Shown here piece by piece: positions 45,177 to 60,919 of a stretch of DNA of 64,000 nt. The notes under the pieces were generated by a model. The model saw nothing but the letters and a program-made list of their open reading frames with translations, was not told the DNA's origin and did no database searches. A program made the translations under genes and the position numbers. The stretch lies in sequence record OM728297.1, one strand, 5' to 3'. Position 1 is the first letter of the stretch; each line of letters starts with the position of its first letter.

Positions 45177-47387
45177 GAATATCATCCCCACGGAAATGCA
45201 AGCGTATATGAAGCACTAGTAAAAATGTATCAACCTTGGTATGTCAATAAAAGCCTTATTGATGCTCATGGGAATTTCGGCTCAATGTATGGGGATCCAG
45301 CCGCCGCTGAACGTTATAGTGAAGCTAGAATTCATAAATTTGCAGAAGAGGTTTTACTATCAAATATTAATAAAAACATTGTTGATTTTGTTCCAAACTT
45401 TGATAATACTTTAGAAGAACCAATAGTTTTACCTTCTATTCTTCCAATGATATTAGTTAATGGTAGTCTCGGTATTGCCGCTGGTTATGCAACTAATCAG
45501 CATCCACATAATATTAATGAAGTTATTGATGAGACTATTAAGTATATTAAGGATAATAATTATCAGATCAAGCTATTACCAGATTACCCAACTGGTGGAG
45601 TAATTATTAATAAAAGGCAAGTAGAAGAAGCATATACTACTGGTAAATCAAAAGCTATTATTAGAGCAAGAATTACCAAAAATGAAAAGAAACATGAATT
45701 AGTTATTAGCGAGATTCCATATCTAAAAACATCTGATAAACTAATTGAATCTATTCAAAATGTAGCTAATGATAGGATTGAGAAAGGTAATAAAATTCCT
45801 AAGAAGATTGAAGGAATTAAAAATATTAAGAACCTTTCAGAAAAAGGTAAAATTAATATTATTATTGAAGTAAAGAAAGGCTATGAGCTAGATTTAATTG
45901 AAAATCAATTATATAAATATACTAATTGTCAATTTACTCTACCAATGGACTTTAATGGAGTAATAGATAAGAAGTTTATTAACTTTACTAACGTCAACCA
46001 AATTGTTGCAGAATGGTTAAATTTCCGTATTGTTACTCTTAGACGTTTATTTACAAATGATCTTAAAGATGCTAAGAAGAGAATTCATATTATTGATGGG
46101 TTACTTACTGCGTTAGGTACTAATCTAGATCGTTTGTTAGATATTATCAGAACTAGTAAAAGTAGATCACAAATGGTTGAAACTATTGTAAAAGAATTTA
46201 AAATTGAAGAAGATCAAGCTGAATATATTGTAAATATGAAATTATATCGTATTAACAATATTGAAATTGATCAATTAAAAAAAGAAAGAAAAGACTTAGA
46301 AAAGAAATATAACGATACGGTATTATATTTTAAAGATGATAATAAGATTAATGAGTATATTATCTCTGAACTTGAAAATGCTAAGAAAAAGTTTGGTTGT
46401 GAACGAAAAACAACTGTTCTAGATTTAAATATAGAAGATATTAATAATAAAGAAAATCTTATTATTGACAGCAACCATACTTTCATTTGTACTAATCGTT
46501 ATATTAAGAAATTAAATAATACTATCAAAGTTCAAAAACGTGGTGGTAAAGGAAATAGTATTGGTAAGATTAAATCTGATGATAATCCAATTACTATTTT
46601 TAATGCGAATAATAAGGATAATATTCTTATTTTTACGAATGCAGGAAAAGTTTATTCAAGAAAAGCTTATGAGATTGAAGGTTGTGAAATCCAATCATAT
46701 GGCTATAATCTAAATGGTATTATTAAAGATGAAACTCTAACAAATGTCCTTGCAATGACAGATGATGAGATGAATAATGAAAATATCAAAATTGCAATTG
46801 GTACTAGATTGAATAAAATTAAACTAGTAGATGTAGCAGAATTTAAGAATATTTATCAATCTGGTATTATTGCAACTAAATTAAATGATGGTGATAGTGT
46901 TATCTTTGCTCAAAAAGTAGATATGAAAGGAAAGAATTCTATTATTGCTTGTACTAATACAGGAGCAACAATTAATATGTCACTTGACTCTATCCCAGTA
47001 GTTCTTCGCCCTACATTTGGTTCTAACATTTTTGACAATTCTATTATCAATAAAGGAGATTATATTGCTGGTATTGATCTAGTAACAGAAGAAGTATCAC
47101 ATGCTTTCTTTATCAGTAAAAAAGGATTGGGAAAACGAGTTGAAATCTCTGAGTTCCCTGAACAAATCCGTGGTGGTAAAGGTCGAATTGGAATTAGAGC
47201 AAAAGAAAATGATGAAATTGTGAGAATTGTTTCTGTTAAACCAGATTCTGATTTAACCATTATTAGTAATACTAGTATTATTGGAATGGACATTGATGAA
47301 GTAAGTGTATTACTCCGTCCAGCATTTGGTAACACTATTAAGAAATTAAATAAAGATGAGATTATTTTGGGAGCAACCGCTATTTAA
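45177..47387 (+). CDS. gyrA: DNA gyrase subunit A, exon 2
   Basis: YHPHG, GNFGS, catalytic RYSEAR, NGSLGIAAG, GyrA-box QKRGGKG, C-terminal beta-pinwheel repeats; spliced product 806 aa. Confidence 0.93.
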   Translation, partial: EYHPHGNASVYEALVKMYQPWYVNKSLIDAHGNFGSMYGDPAAAERYSEARIHKFAEEVLLSNINKNIVDFVPNFDNTLEEPIVLPSILPMILVNGSLGIAAGYATNQHPHNINEVIDETIKYIKDNNYQIKLLPDYPTGGVIINKRQVEEAYTTGKSKAIIRARITKNEKKHELVISEIPYLKTSDKLIESIQNVANDRIEKGNKIPKKIEGIKNIKNLSEKGKINIIIEVKKGYELDLIENQLYKYTNCQFTLPMDFNGVIDKKFINFTNVNQIVAEWLNFRIVTLRRLFTNDLKDAKKRIHIIDGLLTALGTNLDRLLDIIRTSKSRSQMVETIVKEFKIEEDQAEYIVNMKLYRINNIEIDQLKKERKDLEKKYNDTVLYFKDDNKINEYIISELENAKKKFGCERKTTVLDLNIEDINNKENLIIDSNHTFICTNRYIKKLNNTIKVQKRGGKGNSIGKIKSDDNPITIFNANNKDNILIFTNAGKVYSRKAYEIEGCEIQSYGYNLNGIIKDETLTNVLAMTDDEMNNENIKIAIGTRLNKIKLVDVAEFKNIYQSGIIATKLNDGDSVIFAQKVDMKGKNSIIACTNTGATINMSLDSIPVVLRPTFGSNIFDNSIINKGDYIAGIDLVTEEVSHAFFISKKGLGKRVEISEFPEQIRGGKGRIGIRAKENDEIVRIVSVKPDSDLTIISNTSIIGMDIDEVSVLLRPAFGNTIKKLNKDEIILGATAI

Positions 47388-51142: not shown

Positions 51143-52303
51143 ATGAATCACACTGTGATAAAAGATAACTTAGAAAAAGCTATTCATGTTGCTTTATCTG
51201 ATAAACATAATACTGACAAATTGAATCATATAGTTAAGAAATATATAGATCACAATAACCAAATATTATATGCAAATGCTCCATTACAACGACTTTATTT
51301 CTCTGATACTGATAGAAATCATATTTTTGAATTAACAGGAGTGAAGAAAAATTATATTGGGGAAATCATAAAGAAAGTTGATATGATTAAAAGTTCATGG
51401 AAAATTGTTAATAATCCATTCAATATTCTAATGGCAATGATTATCAGACAGTATTCTATTGATAAGAAAGAAGAGTCATTAAATAATTCTCTCCTTTACC
51501 TAACTCTTTCGCTTTATAGCTCGCTACATTATAAGTACTTTCAGTATATTCCGAATGAGAATGTTATGAATTATACAATTAATAACTTAAATAATAAATT
51601 TTTATTTAAACAGTATGGTGTAGTAATTAAAGCACTATTTCATACAGCTAATAAAACGTTAGAAAAATATGAAAAAGATTTAAAAAGAGGTAATGATGAA
51701 GATATAGTTAACTTTTTAATGTTTCTTCAGACACGTTTAAATAACTTAATGAAAAATTTTACTAGTGAATATATGAAGAATTATAAGAGTAAAAAGTATT
51801 TGAATACTGAAAAGGATAATACAGATGAAGATAATTTTTATGAAACTGATAATGTTTCATTAATGATATCTCGTCTAACTAGTCAAACGACTAATAAGTT
51901 TTATTCAGGAGATTTAAATGATAAGCTAATTAGAGTTTCATCTAAATTTAGTGATGTAAGTCCTATCACACTTAAATATGCTTTAGAAAGTATTAAAAAG
52001 AATGAGCGAGAAAAAGTTGAAAGCCTTATTCAATCTATTCTACAAGTATATTTGATTGACGGAAAGAATAGTTATGAAAGTATAGCTTCTCAGAGGTTTA
52101 TTGCATATTGTATATCCATATATTCTAAGAGTAATACAAAAGATGTGAATATTCTGAGAATTAAAAAACTCCTTGACTATTTTCTTAAGAATAATAGTAA
52201 TAAATACAGTGAAACTGAGAGGGAAGCTACTAGAATCAGTTATAGAAAAGCATTTTATATGTATATTGTATTATTTATCCAGCAAAATCAATTAAAACAC
52301 TAA
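51143..52303 (+). CDS. Hypothetical late (probably structural) protein
   Basis: 386 aa, late promoter upstream, terminator downstream. Confidence 0.7.
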   Translation: MNHTVIKDNLEKAIHVALSDKHNTDKLNHIVKKYIDHNNQILYANAPLQRLYFSDTDRNHIFELTGVKKNYIGEIIKKVDMIKSSWKIVNNPFNILMAMIIRQYSIDKKEESLNNSLLYLTLSLYSSLHYKYFQYIPNENVMNYTINNLNNKFLFKQYGVVIKALFHTANKTLEKYEKDLKRGNDEDIVNFLMFLQTRLNNLMKNFTSEYMKNYKSKKYLNTEKDNTDEDNFYETDNVSLMISRLTSQTTNKFYSGDLNDKLIRVSSKFSDVSPITLKYALESIKKNEREKVESLIQSILQVYLIDGKNSYESIASQRFIAYCISIYSKSNTKDVNILRIKKLLDYFLKNNSNKYSETEREATRISYRKAFYMYIVLFIQQNQLKH

Positions 52304-52306
52304 AAG

Positions 52307-52340
52307 GTAATTACTGTCAATCCAATTTGACAGTAATTAC
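52307..52340 (+). terminator. Intrinsic terminator
   Basis: 14-bp stem gtaattactgtcaa/ttgacagtaattac. Confidence 0.7.
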
Positions 52341-52352
52341 TTATTTCTCTTG

Positions 52353-52364
52353 AACATTACTATA
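52353..52364 (+). promoter_or_regulatory. Putative late promoter AACA-N6-TA
   Basis: AACAttactaTA at head of the 52389-60850 operon. Confidence 0.7.
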
Positions 52365-52388
52365 TAATTAATAAAGGAGTTGAAGAAT

Positions 52389-52730
52389 ATGCCAAGTAAT
52401 ACAGCTAAGGGATGGGAAGACCAATTATCATGGGATGATTCAACAAGTACAGATGGTGGTTCTTCCTCTATTACAATTGCACCTGAAGAACCAGTACAGC
52501 TTATCAGAGATCCAGAAACAAATCAAGTTACTAAGGTAGTTTATGGAAACATGTCTCGGATGATGGAAGGAGAACCTGTTGTCATGTGGTCAGAAGAAAT
52601 TCTTCGTGATGAGGAAACTGGTCAAGTAATTGGTATTAGAACTGTTAGACCTAATGGAACCTCTACAGTTGAAACTATTCTTCGTGATGAAAATGGCATG
52701 TTTCTTGGTACAGAATTGAAATATGAATAG
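52389..52730 (+). CDS. Hypothetical acidic beta-rich protein (late module gene 1)
   Basis: AAAGGAG before ATG 52389. Confidence 0.75.
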   Translation: MPSNTAKGWEDQLSWDDSTSTDGGSSSITIAPEEPVQLIRDPETNQVTKVVYGNMSRMMEGEPVVMWSEEILRDEETGQVIGIRTVRPNGTSTVETILRDENGMFLGTELKYE

Positions 52731-52742
52731 AGGTGATATAAG

Positions 52743-53444
52743 TTGGGTTTACCAAGTTTAATTATAAACTTTGAAGAGATTAAGGATCCAATTATTAGAG
52801 CTATTAATGAAGCAGCAATTTCAGTATCAGTTGGTGATGTAACTCTAGATTCTTCTTCTATTACAATTGATACAACTGAAATTGAAAAGTCTTTAGATGA
52901 TATCCTATCTAAATTAGGAACTGTTGATAGTAATGTTAGATTAGTTCAGGATGCTAGTAAAAATATTCTTAATAGTTTAATTGCTCATGATAATAATCTT
53001 AAAAATTCAATGGATCAATTAGGAACTAAACTTGACAATATATTAAGTACAACTACGAATATGTTTAATATATTAGAAGAAATTAAGAAACAATTGGCAA
53101 CTGAAGGAAATCAAAGAGCTATTGGATACTCACTTGCAGTTCCAAGTGTAGCTGGTAGTTACACAAAAGTTTTTACTAGTGATAAAGATACTATTTTAAC
53201 TGGGATAACTATCTCTCAATCAGCATGGAATAACAATGATAAATGGTCTCTAAAAATTGGTGATTTTATTATGTTTGATAGAATTTATACTAAAAATCGT
53301 GGAGAGCATAAAGAATTAAAGAAATTCTTTCCAGTACCAGCTAATACACCAATAACATTTCAATTTGATAATACTAGTAGTGCCAATAGTAAATATGTAT
53401 GGTTTGATATCGACTATATTGAAATTGATAAACCTACAGTTTGA
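52743..53444 (+). CDS. MGLPS-family protein 1 (coiled coil + C-terminal beta-sandwich)
   Basis: MGLPSLIIN..QSAW..DKWSL..VPANTPITF..WFDIDY. Confidence 0.8.
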   Translation: MGLPSLIINFEEIKDPIIRAINEAAISVSVGDVTLDSSSITIDTTEIEKSLDDILSKLGTVDSNVRLVQDASKNILNSLIAHDNNLKNSMDQLGTKLDNILSTTTNMFNILEEIKKQLATEGNQRAIGYSLAVPSVAGSYTKVFTSDKDTILTGITISQSAWNNNDKWSLKIGDFIMFDRIYTKNRGEHKELKKFFPVPANTPITFQFDNTSSANSKYVWFDIDYIEIDKPTV

Positions 53445-53460
53445 TTAGGAGGTAACTTAA

Positions 53461-54153
53461 ATGGGGCTTCCTTCTTATATAATAAACTATAATGACTCTG
53501 CAAAATATATTCAGGAGGCTATTAGAGATGCTAGATTATCTTTATCCATAAGTGATGTTAATATGGATAAAGTCACTGAAGCTATATTAAATACTTCAGT
53601 AGTTGAAGGCAAATTAAGCTCGATAGTTGATATAAATGATGTTATTAATCAGACTATTTCTAATTTATCATCCGATATTGAAAATATATCTGACTTCATT
53701 ATTACAACAAGTGAAGAAAATAAAGAAATAATAAATCAAATTGAAACTAAATTAAAATCTCAGTTAGATATTACAAAAAGTATTAAAGATACAGTATCTG
53801 GCATAGCTGATAAGCTAAGTCCTCAAGGAGAACAAAGAATTAAAGGCTTCTATGAATATGTTCCTCCTATAAGAGAAGATTTTATATTAGAGTTTATACA
53901 GAACAGAGATATTGAACTAACAGCAATTTCTATGTCCCAAATAGGTTGGAAATATGAAGATACCTATGATTTAATAGTTGGTGAAGATATTATATTTAGT
54001 AATATCTCTACAAAAGAAGTTGCCCAAAAAAAGAAATTTAATAAAGGACTAAAAGTACCTGCTAATACTTCTATAAAATTTATTCTTCATAATAATAGTG
54101 GTAATAGTAGACAGATGTGGTTAGATATAGAATATTTAATAAAACCACAATAA
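53461..54153 (+). CDS. MGLPS-family protein 2
   Basis: MGLPSYIIN..QIGW..DTYDL..VPANTSIKF..WLDIEY. Confidence 0.8.
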   Translation: MGLPSYIINYNDSAKYIQEAIRDARLSLSISDVNMDKVTEAILNTSVVEGKLSSIVDINDVINQTISNLSSDIENISDFIITTSEENKEIINQIETKLKSQLDITKSIKDTVSGIADKLSPQGEQRIKGFYEYVPPIREDFILEFIQNRDIELTAISMSQIGWKYEDTYDLIVGEDIIFSNISTKEVAQKKKFNKGLKVPANTSIKFILHNNSGNSRQMWLDIEYLIKPQ

Positions 54154-54170
54154 GGAGGTTTATTCATTAA

Positions 54171-54857
54171 ATGGGAATGCCTTCTCATATTATTAATCGT
54201 GAAGATCTAGAACAAATAATTATTCAGGCTCTTAATTCTAACAGTTTAAAAGTCAATTTAACAGGTTTAAAACTTCCAGAGACAGTTATTTCAGGAAATA
54301 CAGAAGGTATTGAAACCGGAATGAAATCAATATTAGATGCATTGAATACACAGTCTCAGAATGCTCAAGATTTATTTATGTCTGTCAGTAACTTATTAGC
54401 GAATACTACTATAGTTGAGGACTTATATATTGACAGATTATATGATTTGTCATTATTAGTTTCAAAATTAATTGCTGAAGAATTAGAGATAAATGAATTA
54501 TTAAATAAAATAAAAGATTATTTATCTCTAAAAGGAATTGATAAGTCAGTTAGTATTCGTAAAGATATTCCAAGTGTTAATGGAACCTACTATTTGAATT
54601 GTAAAGTTTCTGAAGAATCAAATATAACTAAAATTACAAGTTTTCAAAATCAATATGATTTTTCAGACTGTTGGGATTTAAGAGTTAATGGAGTAACTGT
54701 GTTTGAAAATGTTTTTTCTAAGGGAATTGAACAAAGAAAATATTTTTCTTCACCTTTAAAAGTTATTCCTACTGATAGAGTTGAATTCTTATTTTATAAT
54801 AATAGTGGAAAACAAAAAACTATATATTATGATATTGATTTTCTCACTATTAGCTAA
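54171..54857 (+). CDS. MGLPS-family protein 3
   Basis: MGMPSHIIN..DCWDL..F.FYNNSG..YDIDF. Confidence 0.8.
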   Translation: MGMPSHIINREDLEQIIIQALNSNSLKVNLTGLKLPETVISGNTEGIETGMKSILDALNTQSQNAQDLFMSVSNLLANTTIVEDLYIDRLYDLSLLVSKLIAEELEINELLNKIKDYLSLKGIDKSVSIRKDIPSVNGTYYLNCKVSEESNITKITSFQNQYDFSDCWDLRVNGVTVFENVFSKGIEQRKYFSSPLKVIPTDRVEFLFYNNSGKQKTIYYDIDFLTIS

Positions 54858-54887
54858 TTTCCTAGCTAAATAATACCCCATTAATGG

Positions 54888-54931
54888 AAGGAGGAAGTTA
54901 CTACTATTATAATAGTAGTAGCAAAAATAAT
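54888..54931 (+). promoter_or_regulatory. SD (AAGGAGG 54888-94) separated from ATG 54932 by a 26-nt hairpin (54897-54922)
   Basis: gttactactatt|at|aatagtagtagc stem; no other SD near ATG 54932. Confidence 0.55.
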
Positions 54932-55975
54932 ATGGCTTTAGTAGATTACAATCTTAGAAGCAATGATAAGTTCTACTACACAGAGGGTTCTACTTCTGTC
55001 GGTGATCTTATTAAAAATGTAGCCAATGAATTTGTTACAAAAGCTGGAACTGAGTATGCATGGACATTAGAATCACCATCAGCTATTTCTAGTGTTACAA
55101 ATAAGGTAATATTATCTACAACAACTTCATTTGGAAAAACTTTCTATTTAAAAATCTTTAGACCAGAGACTACAGATGCAAATAATGTAGTCTCAGTTCC
55201 ACTTACTTATGTAAATATGGCAATCGGCACTGAATTTAATGCTGAAACTGAGGATTTAGTAGAAGGTAAGGTATCACCAGTAACTAAATTATCTTGGTAT
55301 AAAGATGATATTGATCCAAGTATCAAGTCATGGCTACCAGTTTCATATTGGATGAATATTACAAAAGATGCAGTTAACCTTGTATTCCGTGGAGATCCAT
55401 CTGCTGATAATTATCCATATAAAAAATTCTTGGTAGGTTATGCATATATTGGTGCAGTTACACCATTAGAAGATGGTCAATCACCAGATGTAGAATATAA
55501 CTTTGGTATTACTACTTCTTCTGCAAGCGAACCATTAATGAGCAATGCTTATGGACCAAGAACTGGTACAGGAATCACTGATATCTTGATGGTAGCAAAC
55601 AAAATTGGTATGCCATATCAACCACACTATCCATCATTCTATGGTTCTAATCAGTTTATGGATAAGATGAATATTGAGGGTTCACGTTGGAACAATCAAA
55701 AACATCAATTTTCAGATATTACTGTTACTCACTCTATTGATATGGAACGTGGTAAAATGCAGAATATCCTAGTTGGTGATAATTCAGCTCTTTATGATAA
55801 TGATAAACTTGTATACAAAGAAGGTACTACAGAACAATTAACTTATAAGAAATTCCAGATTTCCGCACCTTATAGTTTCCTAAACAATAGTTCTAATACA
55901 CAATATTGTATTGCGATTAGATGCTATAATCCAGATGGTATTTCAAAAGTTGAAGATGGTACTACTGCTAGTTAA
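54932..55975 (+). CDS. Uncharacterised late-module protein (ATG 54932)
   Basis: FYYTEG..LSWYK..WLPVSYW..RGDPSAD..ANKIGMPYQPHYP..DMERGKM; the track's 16-aa N-terminal extension is the SD/hairpin. Confidence 0.8.
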   Translation: MALVDYNLRSNDKFYYTEGSTSVGDLIKNVANEFVTKAGTEYAWTLESPSAISSVTNKVILSTTTSFGKTFYLKIFRPETTDANNVVSVPLTYVNMAIGTEFNAETEDLVEGKVSPVTKLSWYKDDIDPSIKSWLPVSYWMNITKDAVNLVFRGDPSADNYPYKKFLVGYAYIGAVTPLEDGQSPDVEYNFGITTSSASEPLMSNAYGPRTGTGITDILMVANKIGMPYQPHYPSFYGSNQFMDKMNIEGSRWNNQKHQFSDITVTHSIDMERGKMQNILVGDNSALYDNDKLVYKEGTTEQLTYKKFQISAPYSFLNNSSNTQYCIAIRCYNPDGISKVEDGTTAS

Positions 55976-55999
55976 TTAACAAGGGAGAGGATGTAGACT

Positions 56000-58579
56000 A
56001 TGTTTTTGCAAAGATTTTCATTTAAAACTGGTCTACCTCTATTTGCCCATAGATTTCGTTATACATTTAAGGCTTATTTAATTAATGGCTCATCAGTTTT
56101 TTTAAAAATTGATGAGTCTCCTAAAAAAATAGTTAAAAATAAAAATTTATCTATTCTTAAGTCAATTCATAATCTCTATTTAAATAAAAAAGAGGTTTTA
56201 TTAGATTTTTTTGTTAAGGAATTAGATAAAACAGCAAAGTCTACTAAAAAATTAACCGTACCTAATAAATTAATAGACAAAAAAATTGATAAATATACAG
56301 TAGAAATTCTTAATAAAAGGATTTATACTGTAGAAAAAAATAACTTAAATGTATATAAGACGAATTCTTTACTGGACTATATAGAGATGGATAAAAATAA
56401 ATTAAGAAAAACATCTCATAACATTAGTACCATTAATAGTATAAACATTAATGGTATTACATATGAGATATATATTCCAAATAATAATTTAACAGTTTCT
56501 TCTGATAAGAGAAAAATAATTTATAATACAATTAGTACTTTATTAGAGACTAAGTATAGATTCGTTAACACAGAGGGAAATTATTTTCAGATTAGCAATG
56601 AATCCATGAAGGAATTAAATCTTGAGAGTGATTTAATTGAATTATATAGAAATAACAAAAATCATATTAATGTATATAATACTATTAATACTCTTGTAAA
56701 GAATAACTATATATTAGACTTAGCAACTTTATCCATTAAATTAGGAGATGAAAATGTTAGATCTATTAATATAAATAATATTATATATGATATTTATAAA
56801 AATTCATTGCATCAGATCAAAAAAGATACTCAAAAAGTTCATCATTTAGATACAATTGTTATAAAGGATATTAATAAGAATTCTGATACTCTTGGATTAG
56901 TTAAGAGAGTTATTAGAAGTGGAAATAATATTAATACTGTTAACACTCTTAGTAAAGATGGAGATAAAAATATCTCTAAATTATTTAATGGGTGGAAGTT
57001 TATTAGAAAGGAACCTACTTGGGAAATAAGTAAACCTAGTAATAGTTTTAATATAAATAAAGATACAATTAAAGATATAACTGTAAATAATGAAAAAGTA
57101 TATTTTAAAAAGACAACTATGATGGATACATCTTTTAAGTTTCTAGTCTATTCATTGTTAGATATTTCAAAAGTGAATATTGATTATAATACTAAGATTT
57201 CTTTTTTACAGTCAATCTCAAGAAAGGATTTATCATTAGTTAGGAATGATTATTACTTACATCCAATTAATGAAAAAGATATTTTTAATTTCACTTTCAT
57301 TGATTATCTTGAAAAAATAAATAAACAAAATTTATTTATTGATGTAAATGATAATTTCTTAATAAATAATAGTTCCAAATCAGTTACAGCGACAAGTAAT
57401 AATCAATATTTATTTAAATCAGATCTTAAGAATATTATTAATGACTCAAATATATCCAAGTACTATAGTCCTAATACAGTAAGGGATATAAATAAAATTA
57501 ATAAAACTTTTGATTTGGGTAAGCATTATAAATTCATGAGTAATCCTATCCATAAAGATTTTAATTTAAATATAAAACAACCAGAGGGTTTATTTGAAAC
57601 ACTATCTAATTATTATTTGAATATTGATAATGGAGATAATTTTATTTTTATTCCTAATAGTGAGTTCCTGAGTAATTTTGAAAATAAAATTATTAGTGTA
57701 AATTATAATAATTATAATTTATTTAAAAGTGAATTACCAAATATTACAAATAATTATAATTACTCATTAGATAAGTTAAACTATATTAAGATAGATAAAA
57801 GAAAATTTATATCAGTTAAAGATATATTAAATCCCAATATTGATATAAATATTGTCAAAAAACAACTAAGACTAATCGAAGATAAAAGATTAGATAAGTT
57901 TAAATATGTTGATTCAGTGAATTTTCTTACATTAAATAAACGCTGGTGGTTTATAAAACCAACTAATCCAAAAACAAGAATAAATATTCCATCTATTGAC
58001 TATCCTTATGAAAATAAACCAGTAATGGATATAAAAGAGCATCCTATTCAAGCATTTAAAGATTTAGGCACTAATGATATTGATGTCAGTATTGAGATTT
58101 TACTTGAATTAGTCAATATTGTTATGCATTGGTGGCATCACTCGTATAATGAACTTTATAGAGGTCTAGGTGATGAGTCTATTATTGGTATTATGAATGT
58201 ATTAAATGAATGGTGGAATCTAGAATCTTCTCAAAATCAAGTTAATGACGATAAGACTAACAAAGAATATGAACGAGTTTTTAGATGGATTAGATGGGAA
58301 GCTGAAAAGGTATACTTTGATTTCAAGAAAGACTACCAAAACAATTTAATATATAACGGTAATTATTATATGGAGATATTTACCAAAAATCTTTTAGAAT
58401 ATATTGAATTTCACCACTATATGATTGTGCCTATTTATAAATCTTTAGATCGAATGGATATTATGAGGGCAATAATGGATGATGATCCACAGGGAGATAT
58501 TATGATTGAACTCCCTGATAAAAATAAAGGTGAAAGAGATTATATTATTGATTCTGAAGATAGTAATTATCTCTTGTAA
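56000..58579 (+). CDS. Large fibre-like protein with 17-aa repeats and Trp-rich C-terminal domain
   Basis: Asn/Ile/Lys-rich shaft; KRWWF..SIEILLELVNI..FRWIRWEAEKVYF. Confidence 0.7.
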   Translation: MFLQRFSFKTGLPLFAHRFRYTFKAYLINGSSVFLKIDESPKKIVKNKNLSILKSIHNLYLNKKEVLLDFFVKELDKTAKSTKKLTVPNKLIDKKIDKYTVEILNKRIYTVEKNNLNVYKTNSLLDYIEMDKNKLRKTSHNISTINSININGITYEIYIPNNNLTVSSDKRKIIYNTISTLLETKYRFVNTEGNYFQISNESMKELNLESDLIELYRNNKNHINVYNTINTLVKNNYILDLATLSIKLGDENVRSININNIIYDIYKNSLHQIKKDTQKVHHLDTIVIKDINKNSDTLGLVKRVIRSGNNINTVNTLSKDGDKNISKLFNGWKFIRKEPTWEISKPSNSFNINKDTIKDITVNNEKVYFKKTTMMDTSFKFLVYSLLDISKVNIDYNTKISFLQSISRKDLSLVRNDYYLHPINEKDIFNFTFIDYLEKINKQNLFIDVNDNFLINNSSKSVTATSNNQYLFKSDLKNIINDSNISKYYSPNTVRDINKINKTFDLGKHYKFMSNPIHKDFNLNIKQPEGLFETLSNYYLNIDNGDNFIFIPNSEFLSNFENKIISVNYNNYNLFKSELPNITNNYNYSLDKLNYIKIDKRKFISVKDILNPNIDINIVKKQLRLIEDKRLDKFKYVDSVNFLTLNKRWWFIKPTNPKTRINIPSIDYPYENKPVMDIKEHPIQAFKDLGTNDIDVSIEILLELVNIVMHWWHHSYNELYRGLGDESIIGIMNVLNEWWNLESSQNQVNDDKTNKEYERVFRWIRWEAEKVYFDFKKDYQNNLIYNGNYYMEIFTKNLLEYIEFHHYMIVPIYKSLDRMDIMRAIMDDDPQGDIMIELPDKNKGERDYIIDSEDSNYLL

Positions 58580-58596
58580 ATTAGGGAGGAAAAAAT

Positions 58597-58872
58597 ATGG
58601 CAACAACTACTGGTCCAACTTATAATTCTGTAGGAAGTACTAGTTCTTCTTTTAAACAACCAAGACAAAAAATGTGGGGAGTTTTTAGCCGTCCAAACTC
58701 ACAGGACGGAGCAAAATATTGGGAATTGACTTTGCTGACCAACAGTCTTCAAGAAGCTAAGGAAAAAGTTAATGATTGGTTAAAAAATCCACCAACTGGT
58801 CAATATGCTCAAGCTGGATTGAATAACATCATTCTTTGCGAAGTTGTTCCTGTTGATATGGAAGTAATTTAA
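58597..58872 (+). CDS. PRQKMWG-family protein 1
   Basis: FKQPRQKMWGVF..TNSLQEAKEKVNDWL..AGLNNII..EVVP. Confidence 0.8.
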   Translation: MATTTGPTYNSVGSTSSSFKQPRQKMWGVFSRPNSQDGAKYWELTLLTNSLQEAKEKVNDWLKNPPTGQYAQAGLNNIILCEVVPVDMEVI

Positions 58873-58893
58873 CTTTAATAGGAGGAATTTAGT

Positions 58894-59493
58894 ATGGGCA
58901 GATTTGATCCAGTTACTTATAAGTCACTGGCTAATGAAGATAATACATTTAATAGATTGCGTCAAAAGACATGGGGAGTCTTTATTGTTAGTGAATATAA
59001 AGAAACAGATGGAGAACCAGTTCCAGTTAATGCATCTTCAATGAAAGAAGAATATACATTATTTGGAATCGAAAGTTCGAATTTAGCAAAAAGAGATTAT
59101 TCTATTAAGGATTATGATCCAAATGCAATTATTCCAAAAACTGGTCCAGAAGGTGAAGAAATTAAAACAATTCTTAATGTTTCTATTCTTAAAGATGGAG
59201 CAACCAAACTAGGAACTAAAAGAATTCTTGATGGTTCAATTTTTAAAGATAATCAACCCTATTATGCTGATAGTGATCTATTGTATGATAATGTTAAAAT
59301 CTATTACTACTATTCAAAGGTAAAAGATTATTCATGGAATCTCGTATTACTAACAAAAAGTCTTCAAGAAGCTAAAGATAAGGTAAATGATTGGTTGCGT
59401 TTACCTGAGATTGGTAGTAATTATCCATTAGCTGGTATAAATAGTATAATGATTACAGAAATAGTACCTTCTGACAGTATAATTGAATTATAG
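58894..59493 (+). CDS. PRQKMWG-family protein 2 (with ~110-aa insertion)
   Basis: LRQKTWGVF..[insert]..TKSLQEAKDKVNDWL..AGINSIMITEIVP. Confidence 0.8.
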   Translation: MGRFDPVTYKSLANEDNTFNRLRQKTWGVFIVSEYKETDGEPVPVNASSMKEEYTLFGIESSNLAKRDYSIKDYDPNAIIPKTGPEGEEIKTILNVSILKDGATKLGTKRILDGSIFKDNQPYYADSDLLYDNVKIYYYYSKVKDYSWNLVLLTKSLQEAKDKVNDWLRLPEIGSNYPLAGINSIMITEIVPSDSIIEL

Positions 59494-59505
59494 GGAGGGA
59501 TATAG

Positions 59506-59775
59506 ATGGAATATTCTACAGTTGAATACAATGCTGTTTCAACAAGTAATAGTATTTTTAAACAACCTAGACAAAAAATGTGGGGAGTTTTTGTTGCAGT
59601 CAGTAAGACTGGTAACATTAATAAATGGAAACTAATTTATTTAAATAATGATTTTGATGGTGCAAAAGAAATCTTTAATGATTGGTTGCAAAATCCAAAA
59701 GATCCAAGTCTTGCAGGTATGGACAATATTATTATGACAGAAGTTCTTCCTGCTAATAGCTCTACGAGAAACTAA
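59506..59775 (+). CDS. PRQKMWG-family protein 3
   Basis: FKQPRQKMWGVF..AKEIFNDWL..AGMDNIIMTEVLP. Confidence 0.8.
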   Translation: MEYSTVEYNAVSTSNSIFKQPRQKMWGVFVAVSKTGNINKWKLIYLNNDFDGAKEIFNDWLQNPKDPSLAGMDNIIMTEVLPANSSTRN

Positions 59776-59813
59776 AAATGAATGTAATGGGGTATTTCCC
59801 ATTACATTCATTT
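59776..59813 (+). terminator. Intra-operon hairpin (partial terminator or mRNA stabiliser)
   Basis: 16-bp stem aaatgaatgtaatggg/cccattacattcattt, short U-tract. Confidence 0.55.
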
Positions 59814-59839
59814 AATTAAAGAAAGGAGTATTGTTATTT

Positions 59840-60850
59840 ATGAATCTTTTAAAGGTAAGAGATGGTAGATTGGAATTAGATAATTTCTATACTAACAGTG
59901 ACTTTGCTGATTTTTTAAATAAGGGTGGCACTCATAAGGATTTTGATGATAATTCTCTGTATATTGATACTAATGAAAGAATTGAAAGAACCCTAAATTA
60001 TAATAATTTTCTTATTGAAATTAAAAAAGAAAATTGGGAAGAATTAAATGATGATGAGAAATTTACATTTTATGTCGGTGATTCAGTAAATGAATATGGA
60101 ATAAGTGAAGACAAGGATGAACCCATTCAAAAACAATTTCAGAAGATCATTTATTCTGAGGGTTATGTTCAATGTTATGTATCAGATGATGGTAAATCAT
60201 GGCAGAATCTAGGAGGTGTCAGTACTTTAGGTGAAAATATTATTAAACAGGGGTTTCAAAAAATAAGTACAAAAAGCACAAAATTAATACATTATGCAGT
60301 CTATACTGATCCATTTTTAACTATTCAAAATTTTCCTGAAGGATACAGTGCTAAATTGTTTGATGAAACTAATACTTTAATTAAGGAAAGATTATTTGAT
60401 ATAAATAATGAAGCTAAAATATTTTTAGATTACAATATCAATGGTTATCTAGTAATATATGACTTAGAAGGTAATGAAGTAATAAGAACCGATCAAATGA
60501 ATTTTTCATATGGAAATACATTTGTAGCTTGTGATTATAAGTTAGAAATGATTTACAAAGATCAAGTACTTCCAAATGAAGAAGTGACTGAAATTGATAC
60601 TTACGGCTCTCCTCAATTAGTTACATTAAAGAATATTTCAGATAACCAGACATATAATAATTTAACTCTAACAACTGAAACTCTTAGTGATGATTTAATT
60701 GAATTAAGTCTAGATAATATTAATTTTAGTGAGTCAATTACTATTCCTGATATACTTCCAAATGAAGAAGTAGATATTTATATTAATATAAATCGAGGAA
60801 AGAAAACACCAACATTTTCATACAGAGAGTTTTTATTTAAAGTTATTTAA
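59840..60850 (+). CDS. Beta-rich late-module protein (lectin/adhesin-like)
   Basis: MNLLKVRDGRLELDNF..YVSDDGKSWQNLGG; AAAGGAG SD. Confidence 0.7.
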   Translation: MNLLKVRDGRLELDNFYTNSDFADFLNKGGTHKDFDDNSLYIDTNERIERTLNYNNFLIEIKKENWEELNDDEKFTFYVGDSVNEYGISEDKDEPIQKQFQKIIYSEGYVQCYVSDDGKSWQNLGGVSTLGENIIKQGFQKISTKSTKLIHYAVYTDPFLTIQNFPEGYSAKLFDETNTLIKERLFDINNEAKIFLDYNINGYLVIYDLEGNEVIRTDQMNFSYGNTFVACDYKLEMIYKDQVLPNEEVTEIDTYGSPQLVTLKNISDNQTYNNLTLTTETLSDDLIELSLDNINFSESITIPDILPNEEVDIYININRGKKTPTFSYREFLFKVI

Positions 60851-60856
60851 TAATAC

Positions 60857-60919
60857 GACTAATATGTTTTTAAAATATATATTATACTTTTGATATAATA
60901 TAATAAAAACATATTAGTC
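60857..60919 (+). promoter_or_regulatory. 15-bp inverted repeat enclosing an early promoter (60872-60895)
   Basis: gactaatatgttttt..33 nt containing TATATTAT..aaaaacatattagtc. Confidence 0.6.

Follow-up and report, generated by a model that had tools for sequence, protein, structure and literature searches.

Phages of Takahashivirus are phiKZ-related jumbo myoviruses in which uracil replaces thymine in the DNA. They are described in the literature as flagellotropic, with corkscrew tail fibres, typically three, attached to the baseplate. Corkscrew or curly tail fibres have been reported for PBS1, AR9, BpSp and 0305phi8-36, and both PBS1 and 0305phi8-36 have three of them. Here we analyze a cassette of ten genes, g053 to g062, in an 8.5-kb stretch (positions 52353-60850) of a 64,000-nucleotide segment of sequence record OM728297.1, called the window in what follows. 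The stretch belongs to Bacillus phage vB_BsuM-Goe21 (Goe21; 100% identity, same coordinates) and shares 98.9% identity with AR9, 97.7% with PBS1 and 89.5% with Internexus, all four phages being members of Takahashivirus. We propose that this cassette probably encodes the three corkscrew tail fibres that grip the flagellum in PBS1-type phages, and that it constitutes a mobile module.

The closest described system is that of 0305phi8-36, where the high-copy virion proteins gp129 and gp131 were proposed as curly-fibre subunits (Thomas 2007; Hardies 2007), an assignment that is itself a candidate only, based on copy number. When this phage is compared with the related prophage BtI1, orfs 126-134 stand out as an indel, and the products of ORF127-133 have been found by mass spectrometry, that of ORF128 being a low-copy virion protein. 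In BpSp, Gp133 was put forward as a curly-fibre candidate by its resemblance to ORF129 (Yuan and Gao 2016), and the proteome paper on this phage calls the tail-fibre gene unknown. A 2022 review of flagellotropic phages names no corkscrew-fibre genes, and in the literature we found no structure or gene assignment for the fibres of PBS1 and AR9.

Two other systems serve for comparison. In JBD30, three gp47-gp48 heterodimers make up each bent arm, and three such baseplate arms embrace the type IV pilus (PDB 8rk3; Valentova et al. 2024). In phages chi and YSD1, a single curled fibre wraps the flagellar filament to start infection, which resembles what we propose here; we found no homology with these two phages, and in the phage records matches to the cassette families are confined to phages of Firmicutes.

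Gene content of the cassette

The ten co-directional open reading frames (ORFs) listed in a first-pass annotation of the window are all present and correspond to AR9 g053-g062 (Table 1). They represent six families in a fixed order: g053, three MGLPS paralogues (g054-g056), g057, g058, three PRQKMWG paralogues (g059-g061), and g062. No significant Pfam family was found among the ten proteins. For virion status in AR9 we relied on the GenBank annotation and on Table S4 of the 2017 paper on this phage: g057, g058, g060 and g061 are annotated as virion proteins and g059 is listed in Table S4, their detection being by mass spectrometry.

Distribution and synteny

By combining BLAST with family hidden Markov models (HMMs), we found all ten genes, collinear, in BpSp. 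In 0305phi8-36, ORF128 corresponds to the C-terminal domain of the MGLPS proteins, ORF129 to g057, and ORF132 to g062, with the same gene order. In the C. tetani prophage phiCT19406A, gp51-gp57 represent the six families in order, and the same arrangement is present at 20 loci of Clostridiaceae genomes (19 Clostridium and one Hathewaya) as well as at 47 loci of IMG/VR contigs, of which 35 show exactly the succession pre50-ct50-g053-MGL-MGL-g057-g058-g059-g062-ct58. In total, about 70 Clostridium prophage loci carry the cassette. The first-pass annotation had pointed to a syntenic cluster in Clostridium genomes and had suggested a BLAST and synteny check against Firmicute genomes; this check returned syntenic homologues. 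The motifs that it quoted are real and represent the most conserved parts of their families. As for the labels that it named, we did encounter 'hypothetical', and once 'Capsid protein', but not 'cell adhesion'.

In the prophages, the cassette has a fixed place. The tail tube, chaperone and tape-measure genes are followed by genes coding for a ~140-aa (amino acid) protein and a ~360-520-aa hub-like protein, then by the cassette, and downstream of it by variable discoidin- or SPRY-type proteins and finally by the lysis genes. The hub-like protein matches phrog_1887 ('tail protein') and, weakly, the Gp44-like hub domain. Since the cassette comes after the tape-measure and hub-like genes, it occupies the position of distal-tail or adsorption genes. 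In the jumbo phage analyzed here, it stands alone, away from the tape-measure and tail-tip genes. Together with the presence of g057-g061 in the AR9 virion, this position ties the cassette to a virion appendage, as had been supposed, and we consider it very likely that it encodes a distal-tail appendage of some kind.

The block was also suspected to be swappable. We find this reasonable, because the same block is present on the unrelated backbones of phiKZ-related jumbo myoviruses, 0305phi8-36 and ~45-kb siphoviruses, and because the g057 proteins of Bacillus and Clostridium phages are up to ~63% identical over the best-matching segment.

Two further genomes broaden this distribution. Flasso, a siphophage of B. 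cereus (MZ357961, 29-36 kb of the record), harbours a diverged partial cassette directly after the tape-measure gene, in the order pre50-like, hub-like, g053-like, two MGLPS-domain proteins, and a g057-like protein. In a 157-kb IMG/VR contig from a large uncultured phage, two ORFs of 1739 and 502 aa precede the full cassette, in which the g058 homologue has 1017 aa and the g053-like protein 287 aa.

g057, a candidate major fibre subunit

g057 displays 63% identity with BpSp Gp133 and 43-63% with Clostridium prophage proteins. By tblastn it retrieves BpSp Gp133 (7e-147) and ORF129 of 0305phi8-36 (2e-20), the latter being matched by the family HMM at 2e-43. Among 50,697 phage records, the only matches to g057 are in Takahashivirus (PBS1, AR9, Goe21, Internexus and BpSp), in 0305phi8-36, and in two C. 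tetani prophages. The g057-bearing phages PBS1, AR9, BpSp and 0305phi8-36 are exactly the sequenced phages for which corkscrew or curly fibres have been reported. Homologues are also abundant in C. botulinum, C. sporogenes, C. tetani, C. cochlearium, C. ljungdahlii and C. tyrobutyricum, nearly all of them labelled hypothetical.

We modelled g057 with AlphaFold2 (AF2) using 30 homologues (mean predicted local distance difference test (pLDDT) 75.5, predicted template modelling score (pTM) 0.79). When this model is compared with 48,161 PDB representatives (VIA), chain c of 8rk3 stands out with a Z of 16.7 and a root-mean-square deviation of 3.6 Å over 250 residues, the next match having a Z of 4.3. 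We confirmed that this chain is JBD30 gp47. Foldseek likewise matches the model to gp47/gp48 (E 3.7e-6 and 4.8e-6), the second match having the length of gp48. As modelled, g057 has the fold of JBD30 gp47/gp48, and the likeness extends over the whole chain. At the sequence level the two are far apart: g057 is ~14% identical to gp47 and shares no Pfam family with it, Pfam holds no family for gp47/gp48, and a profile search with g057 against PDB sequences gave nothing significant. Comparisons by hhalign indicate no relation of g057 to either g062 or ct58 (probability ≤0.2%).

If the model holds, g057 could be likened to the non-trimeric globular subunits that in JBD30 polymerise into three lateral arms acting on a filamentous host appendage. 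As in JBD30, the cassette homologues of Clostridium and Flasso adjoin tape-measure and tail-tip genes. JBD30 differs in that it has neither the long repeat protein nor the small abundant partners of the g057 cassette, and the targets differ as well, a pilus in JBD30 and, according to the literature, the flagellum in PBS1-type phages.

Among predicted viral structures, the g057 fold is found in ORF129 of 0305phi8-36 and in many ~300-aa 'virion structural proteins'. ORF129 is unlike g057 in being 989 aa long, with large inserts. A g057/gp47-like fold is also displayed by three 0305phi8-36 proteins of 267-293 aa (UniProt A7KUT2, A7KUT3 and A7KUT4; Foldseek E 1e-8 to 1e-9). From the order of their accessions, these are probably ORF158-160, in the baseplate module.

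Residues 222-272 of the g057 model have a pLDDT below 50, and one third of the invariant columns of the family (20 of 60) fall within residues 224-276. This conserved segment of low model confidence may represent a contact that folds only in the assembly.

g058, a long repeat protein

The N-terminal part of g058 is rich in N, I and K and is made of ~35 degenerate repeats over ~640 residues. In the AF2 model (31 homologues), residues 1-648 have a pLDDT of ~30, and residues ~649-830 form a confident helical bundle, for which the structural comparison gave no meaningful match (Z ≤6; best Z 6.0). The periodicity is shared by the family, as 28 of the 31 homologues have their strongest autocorrelation at a lag of 16 or 17 (z up to 10), and the length of the homologues ranges from 609 to 1240 aa. 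ORF130 of 0305phi8-36, which occupies the position of g058, displays the same 16-17-residue period.

As modelled, g058 looks like an extended ruler or scaffold. It resembles tape-measure and ruler proteins in being long, length-variable, low-complexity and repetitive, in having no confident fold alone, and in being present in the virion. However, it has no sequence or Pfam relation to tape-measure proteins, and the prophages have a separate true tape-measure protein upstream; a ruler role would be a functional analogy. By rough arithmetic, ~640 extended residues would span ~220 nm, and one repeat would span ~5-6 nm, near the size of a 40-kDa globule. The fibres measure ~125 nm along the axis in PBS1 and ~187 nm in 0305phi8-36 (187 x 10 nm), and the longer ORF130 (1073 aa, as against 859 aa for g058) goes with the longer fibre.

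Comparison of Goe21 with Internexus reveals a mosaic boundary inside the cassette, with 98-100% identity for g052-g057, 73% for g058, and 86-88% for g060-g062. The repeat region is the most divergent part of g058 between the two phages (50-60% identity), and the length is constant at 859 aa.

A possible corkscrew-fibre system and its alternatives

The cassette is most similar to the module of 0305phi8-36 and BpSp: ORF129 and Gp133 are homologues of g057, the matching genes follow one another in the same order, virions contain the products, and three corkscrew fibres are present. By contrast, gp119, the third published fibre candidate of 0305phi8-36, has no homologue in PBS1-type phages. By analogy with JBD30 and with ruler proteins, we infer a fibre whose location, polymer and ruler architecture, small-protein roles and flagellum binding could be as follows. 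Late transcription would yield much g057 and PRQKMWG protein (g059-g061) and less g058. g057 would be a globular subunit that assembles head-to-tail into a polymer, residues 222-272 contacting the neighbouring subunit or a partner protein. g058 would run along this polymer as a ruler or scaffold and fix the length of the fibre, perhaps also its pitch, and its helical C-terminal domain would anchor or cap the fibre. The three MGLPS proteins would join each fibre to the baseplate, and g062 and g053 would act as low-copy tip, adaptor or assembly factors. The resulting corkscrew fibres would wrap the host flagellar filament. A stricter version, which we put forward only as a speculation and regard as rather unlikely, is a ruler-templated heteropolymer in which each repeat of g058 docks one g057 (together with PRQKMWG proteins), the number of repeats sets the length and helical pitch of a corkscrew acting on rotating flagella, and the whole is a mobile flagellum gripper shared by Bacillus jumbo myoviruses and Clostridium siphoprophages.

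A number of observations weigh against the assignment of the cassette to the corkscrew fibres. None of its proteins has been localised to the fibre, and g053-g056 and g062 carry no virion annotation in AR9. The arms of JBD30 are short, with three heterodimers each, and require two paralogues, whereas the cassette has only one g057-type gene. The correspondence with 0305phi8-36 is also incomplete, as the family HMM detects no sequence match between g058 and ORF130, which are linked by position and periodicity only, and the match between g059 and ORF131 is marginal (HMM E 0.05). The relation between fibre length and the length of g058/ORF130 is a comparison of two phages (n = 2). Moreover, we found in the literature no morphology for phiCT19406A and no micrographs of the Clostridium prophages, and we know of no use of flagella by 0305phi8-36.

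The cassette could instead build another distal-tail structure, either short baseplate arms of the JBD30 type or the sheath 'contraction' fibres of PBS1, with the corkscrews encoded elsewhere. Such a structure would agree with the shortness of the gp47/gp48 arms, with the frequency of a gp47/gp48-like fold in ordinary siphophage virion structural proteins of ~300 aa, with the fact that the small cassette-bearing Clostridium siphoprophages are not known to have corkscrews, and with the existence in PBS1 of sheath fibres to which no genes are assigned. We nevertheless hold it to be a good deal less probable than corkscrew fibres, since the block is the sole virion gene set that we found common to the four corkscrew phages across unrelated backbones, ORF129 and ORF131 are high-copy, as expected of 187 x 10 nm fibres, and a long, length-variable g058 suits a long polymer better than a six-subunit arm.

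Two other possibilities concern the head and g058 itself. In the ~70 prophage loci, the block comes after the tape-measure/hub genes and before those for lysis, a long way from the capsid genes, and the modelled fold of g057 is that of a baseplate fibre protein, which makes a head-associated role, as capsid decoration or vertex, very improbable. Several of the families are assigned by PHROG to 'head and packaging: virion structural protein', but this category is a generic label; other hints in the same direction are the name 'Capsid protein' of one UniRef homologue, the location of the 0305phi8-36 block just after the major head gene, and the unassigned density carried by the PBS1 pentons. Concerning g058, the first-pass annotation had called it fibre-like, and one could imagine it as a classical elongated trimeric tail-fibre shaft to which the other proteins are accessory: it is the largest protein of the block, it is present in the virion, and its middle part is the most divergent between close relatives, as is often the case in receptor-binding fibres. 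A protein that lacks a confident fold and is repetitive and length-variable does not look like a trimeric shaft. Neither Pfam nor PHROG gave a fibre domain for g058, AF2 predicts neither a beta-helix nor a coiled coil nor any other shaft fold (pLDDT ~30 over 648 residues), and the conserved part is a helical bundle with structural matches at Z ≤6. We therefore abandon the fibre-like label and judge a g058 shaft improbable, if somewhat less so than a head protein.

Small and accessory families

The description of the first protein of the cassette as acidic is borne out by g053, which has homologues in BpSp (gp129, E 1e-40), in C. tetani (gp51, 2e-8) and, weakly, in Flasso (3e-4). By hhalign, we found no relation between g053 and g059.

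The three MGLPS and three PRQKMWG paralogues that had been noticed are confirmed by BLASTP. g054, g055 and g056 match each other at E 1e-18 to 1e-34 and share a conserved N-terminus with the MGLPS motif, a helical middle that is longer in the jumbo phages, and a C-terminal beta domain. This beta domain is found alone in ORF128 of 0305phi8-36, in Flasso and in phrog_5955; that of g055 has HMM matches to ORF128 (E 1e-10) and to the Flasso proteins (2e-19). The PRQKMWG family is conserved in the Clostridium prophages; g059 and g061 match at 1e-22, and g060 belongs to the same family with an insert. As each paralogue has its own BpSp orthologue, both triplications predate the split between PBS1 and BpSp.

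g062 shares 37% identity with its Clostridium orthologue and 40% with BpSp gp138, and has an HMM match to ORF132 of 0305phi8-36 (2e-9). It had been described as lectin-like, a label that we could not confirm: its ESM Atlas neighbours carry beta-sandwich Pfam families of carbohydrate-binding type (GH43_C2, CE2_N), a weak lead. The ESM Atlas gave nothing for the MGLPS proteins, and profile searches of MGLPS, g062 and PRQKMWG against PDB sequences gave nothing significant.

Transcription, hairpins and start codons

In the AR9 expression table, all ten genes start from values close to zero and show a strong increase by the last time point, at which RNA is ~ninefold higher for g053 than for g052. 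This late behaviour, together with a terminator hairpin upstream and an inverted repeat at the end (Table 1), agrees with the initial view of a late, self-contained block. Within the block, late RNA is highest for g061 and lowest for g062. The fall between these two genes is ~30-fold and coincides with the hairpin that separates them, which is probably an attenuator or a 3'-end stabiliser and may set the low level of g062.

A late promoter was also said to head the block. The sequence AACATTACTATA at 52353-52364 does match the published AR9 late consensus AACA-N6-TA/G, and it is intergenic, 25 nt 5' of the start codon. However, the window shows no enrichment of the motif (92 matches, where ~119 would be expected), so that a single match proves little, and Table S3 of AR9 has no entry for a g053 start site among the mapped late promoters. 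Nor would it be the sole promoter, as late start sites have been mapped in AR9 within g056, ahead of g057 (this one non-consensus) and, for g059, within the 3' end of g058. The sequences at the first two (AR9 record positions 45237 and 45844) are found in the window at 54211-54222 and ~54811-54830, and that at the third (49366) matches the window promoter at 58340-58351. The start sites mapped inside the block indicate several promoters, the first one being predicted only.

Table 1. Coordinates of the cassette genes and associated signals in the window
Feature	Position	Strand	Remarks
Hairpin terminator closing the g052 unit	52305..52342	+	Upstream boundary of the cassette; 16-bp stem, T-rich tail
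Predicted late promoter (non-virion RNA polymerase, nvRNAP) for g053	52353..52364	+	AACA-N6-TA; fits the AR9 late consensus
g053	52389..52730	+	Small acidic protein, 113 aa, isoelectric point (pI) 4.25; first family of the cassette
g054	52743..53444	+	MGLPS paralogue 1; orthologue of BpSp gp130
g055	53461..54153	+	MGLPS paralogue 2; paralogy by BLASTP
g056	54171..54857	+	MGLPS paralogue 3; internal late promoter 54211-54222, g057 promoter region ~54811-54830
g057	54884..55975	+	Proposed major fibre subunit; 363 aa, or 347 aa from ATG 54932
g058	56000..58579	+	859 aa; residues 1-~648 degenerate 16-17-residue repeats, 649-~830 conserved helical domain
g059	58597..58872	+	PRQKMWG paralogue 1, 91 aa; virion protein in AR9 Table S4
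g060	58894..59493	+	PRQKMWG paralogue 2, 199 aa; ~105-residue insert, both ends match g059/g061
g061	59506..59775	+	PRQKMWG paralogue 3, 89 aa; AR9 virion protein
Hairpin between g061 and g062	59776..59813	+	17-bp stem, -23.1 kcal/mol, z -7.0
g062	59840..60850	+	336 aa, acidic and conserved; weak expression; proposed to act as tip, adaptor or assembly factor
Inverted repeat closing the cassette	60857..60919	+	Terminator-like; read from sequence

The start codons of g053 and g062 were corrected to the ATG at 52389 and at 59840, respectively. For g057, translation may start at 54884 or at 54932; the latter is the start in the AR9 annotation and the place where the homologues begin. The ATG at 54884 has no Shine-Dalgarno sequence, and an AAGGAGG (54888-54894) lies 37 nt 5' of the ATG at 54932. 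Between them, an 11-bp hairpin (54897-54922; -13.8 kcal/mol, z -2.8) would cut the effective spacing to ~11 nt, an arrangement that resembles the bridged Shine-Dalgarno sequence of T4 gene 38.

Upstream of the cassette, g052 (window 51143-52303) codes for a basic 386-aa late protein and has a mapped late promoter and a terminator to itself; the protein is conserved in BpSp (61%) and absent from the Clostridium cassettes. Downstream, the early promoter of the next gene (AAATATATATTAT, 60873-60885) lies within the loop of the closing inverted repeat, and an early promoter is annotated in AR9 at the equivalent place.

Conclusions

The late and virion status of these genes in AR9 is already published, as are the proposals of g057 homologues as curly-fibre candidates (2007, 2016), so that the block is not wholly of unknown function, as it first appeared; its role in adsorption is still an inferred one. 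With respect to the literature that we searched, the new elements are the cassette of six families, which in many Clostridium prophages keeps a fixed position next to the hub, the gp47/gp48 fold predicted for g057, and the ruler-like repeat character that g058 appears to have.

The search for the genes of the corkscrew fibres is hereby narrowed to one ten-gene cassette. Its candidate main subunit, g057, gains through its model a solved structural relative in the pilus-embracing arms of JBD30, and an unusual repeat protein, g058, is singled out as a possible length ruler. An orphan block that is very common next to the tail-tip genes of Clostridium prophages also receives a working annotation, and its distribution suggests a mobile module for adsorption that unrelated phage lineages have exchanged. 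If the ruler-templated gripper were true, it would represent a previously undescribed kind of fibre, and the prophages of C. botulinum, C. tetani and C. sporogenes would be flagellotropic.

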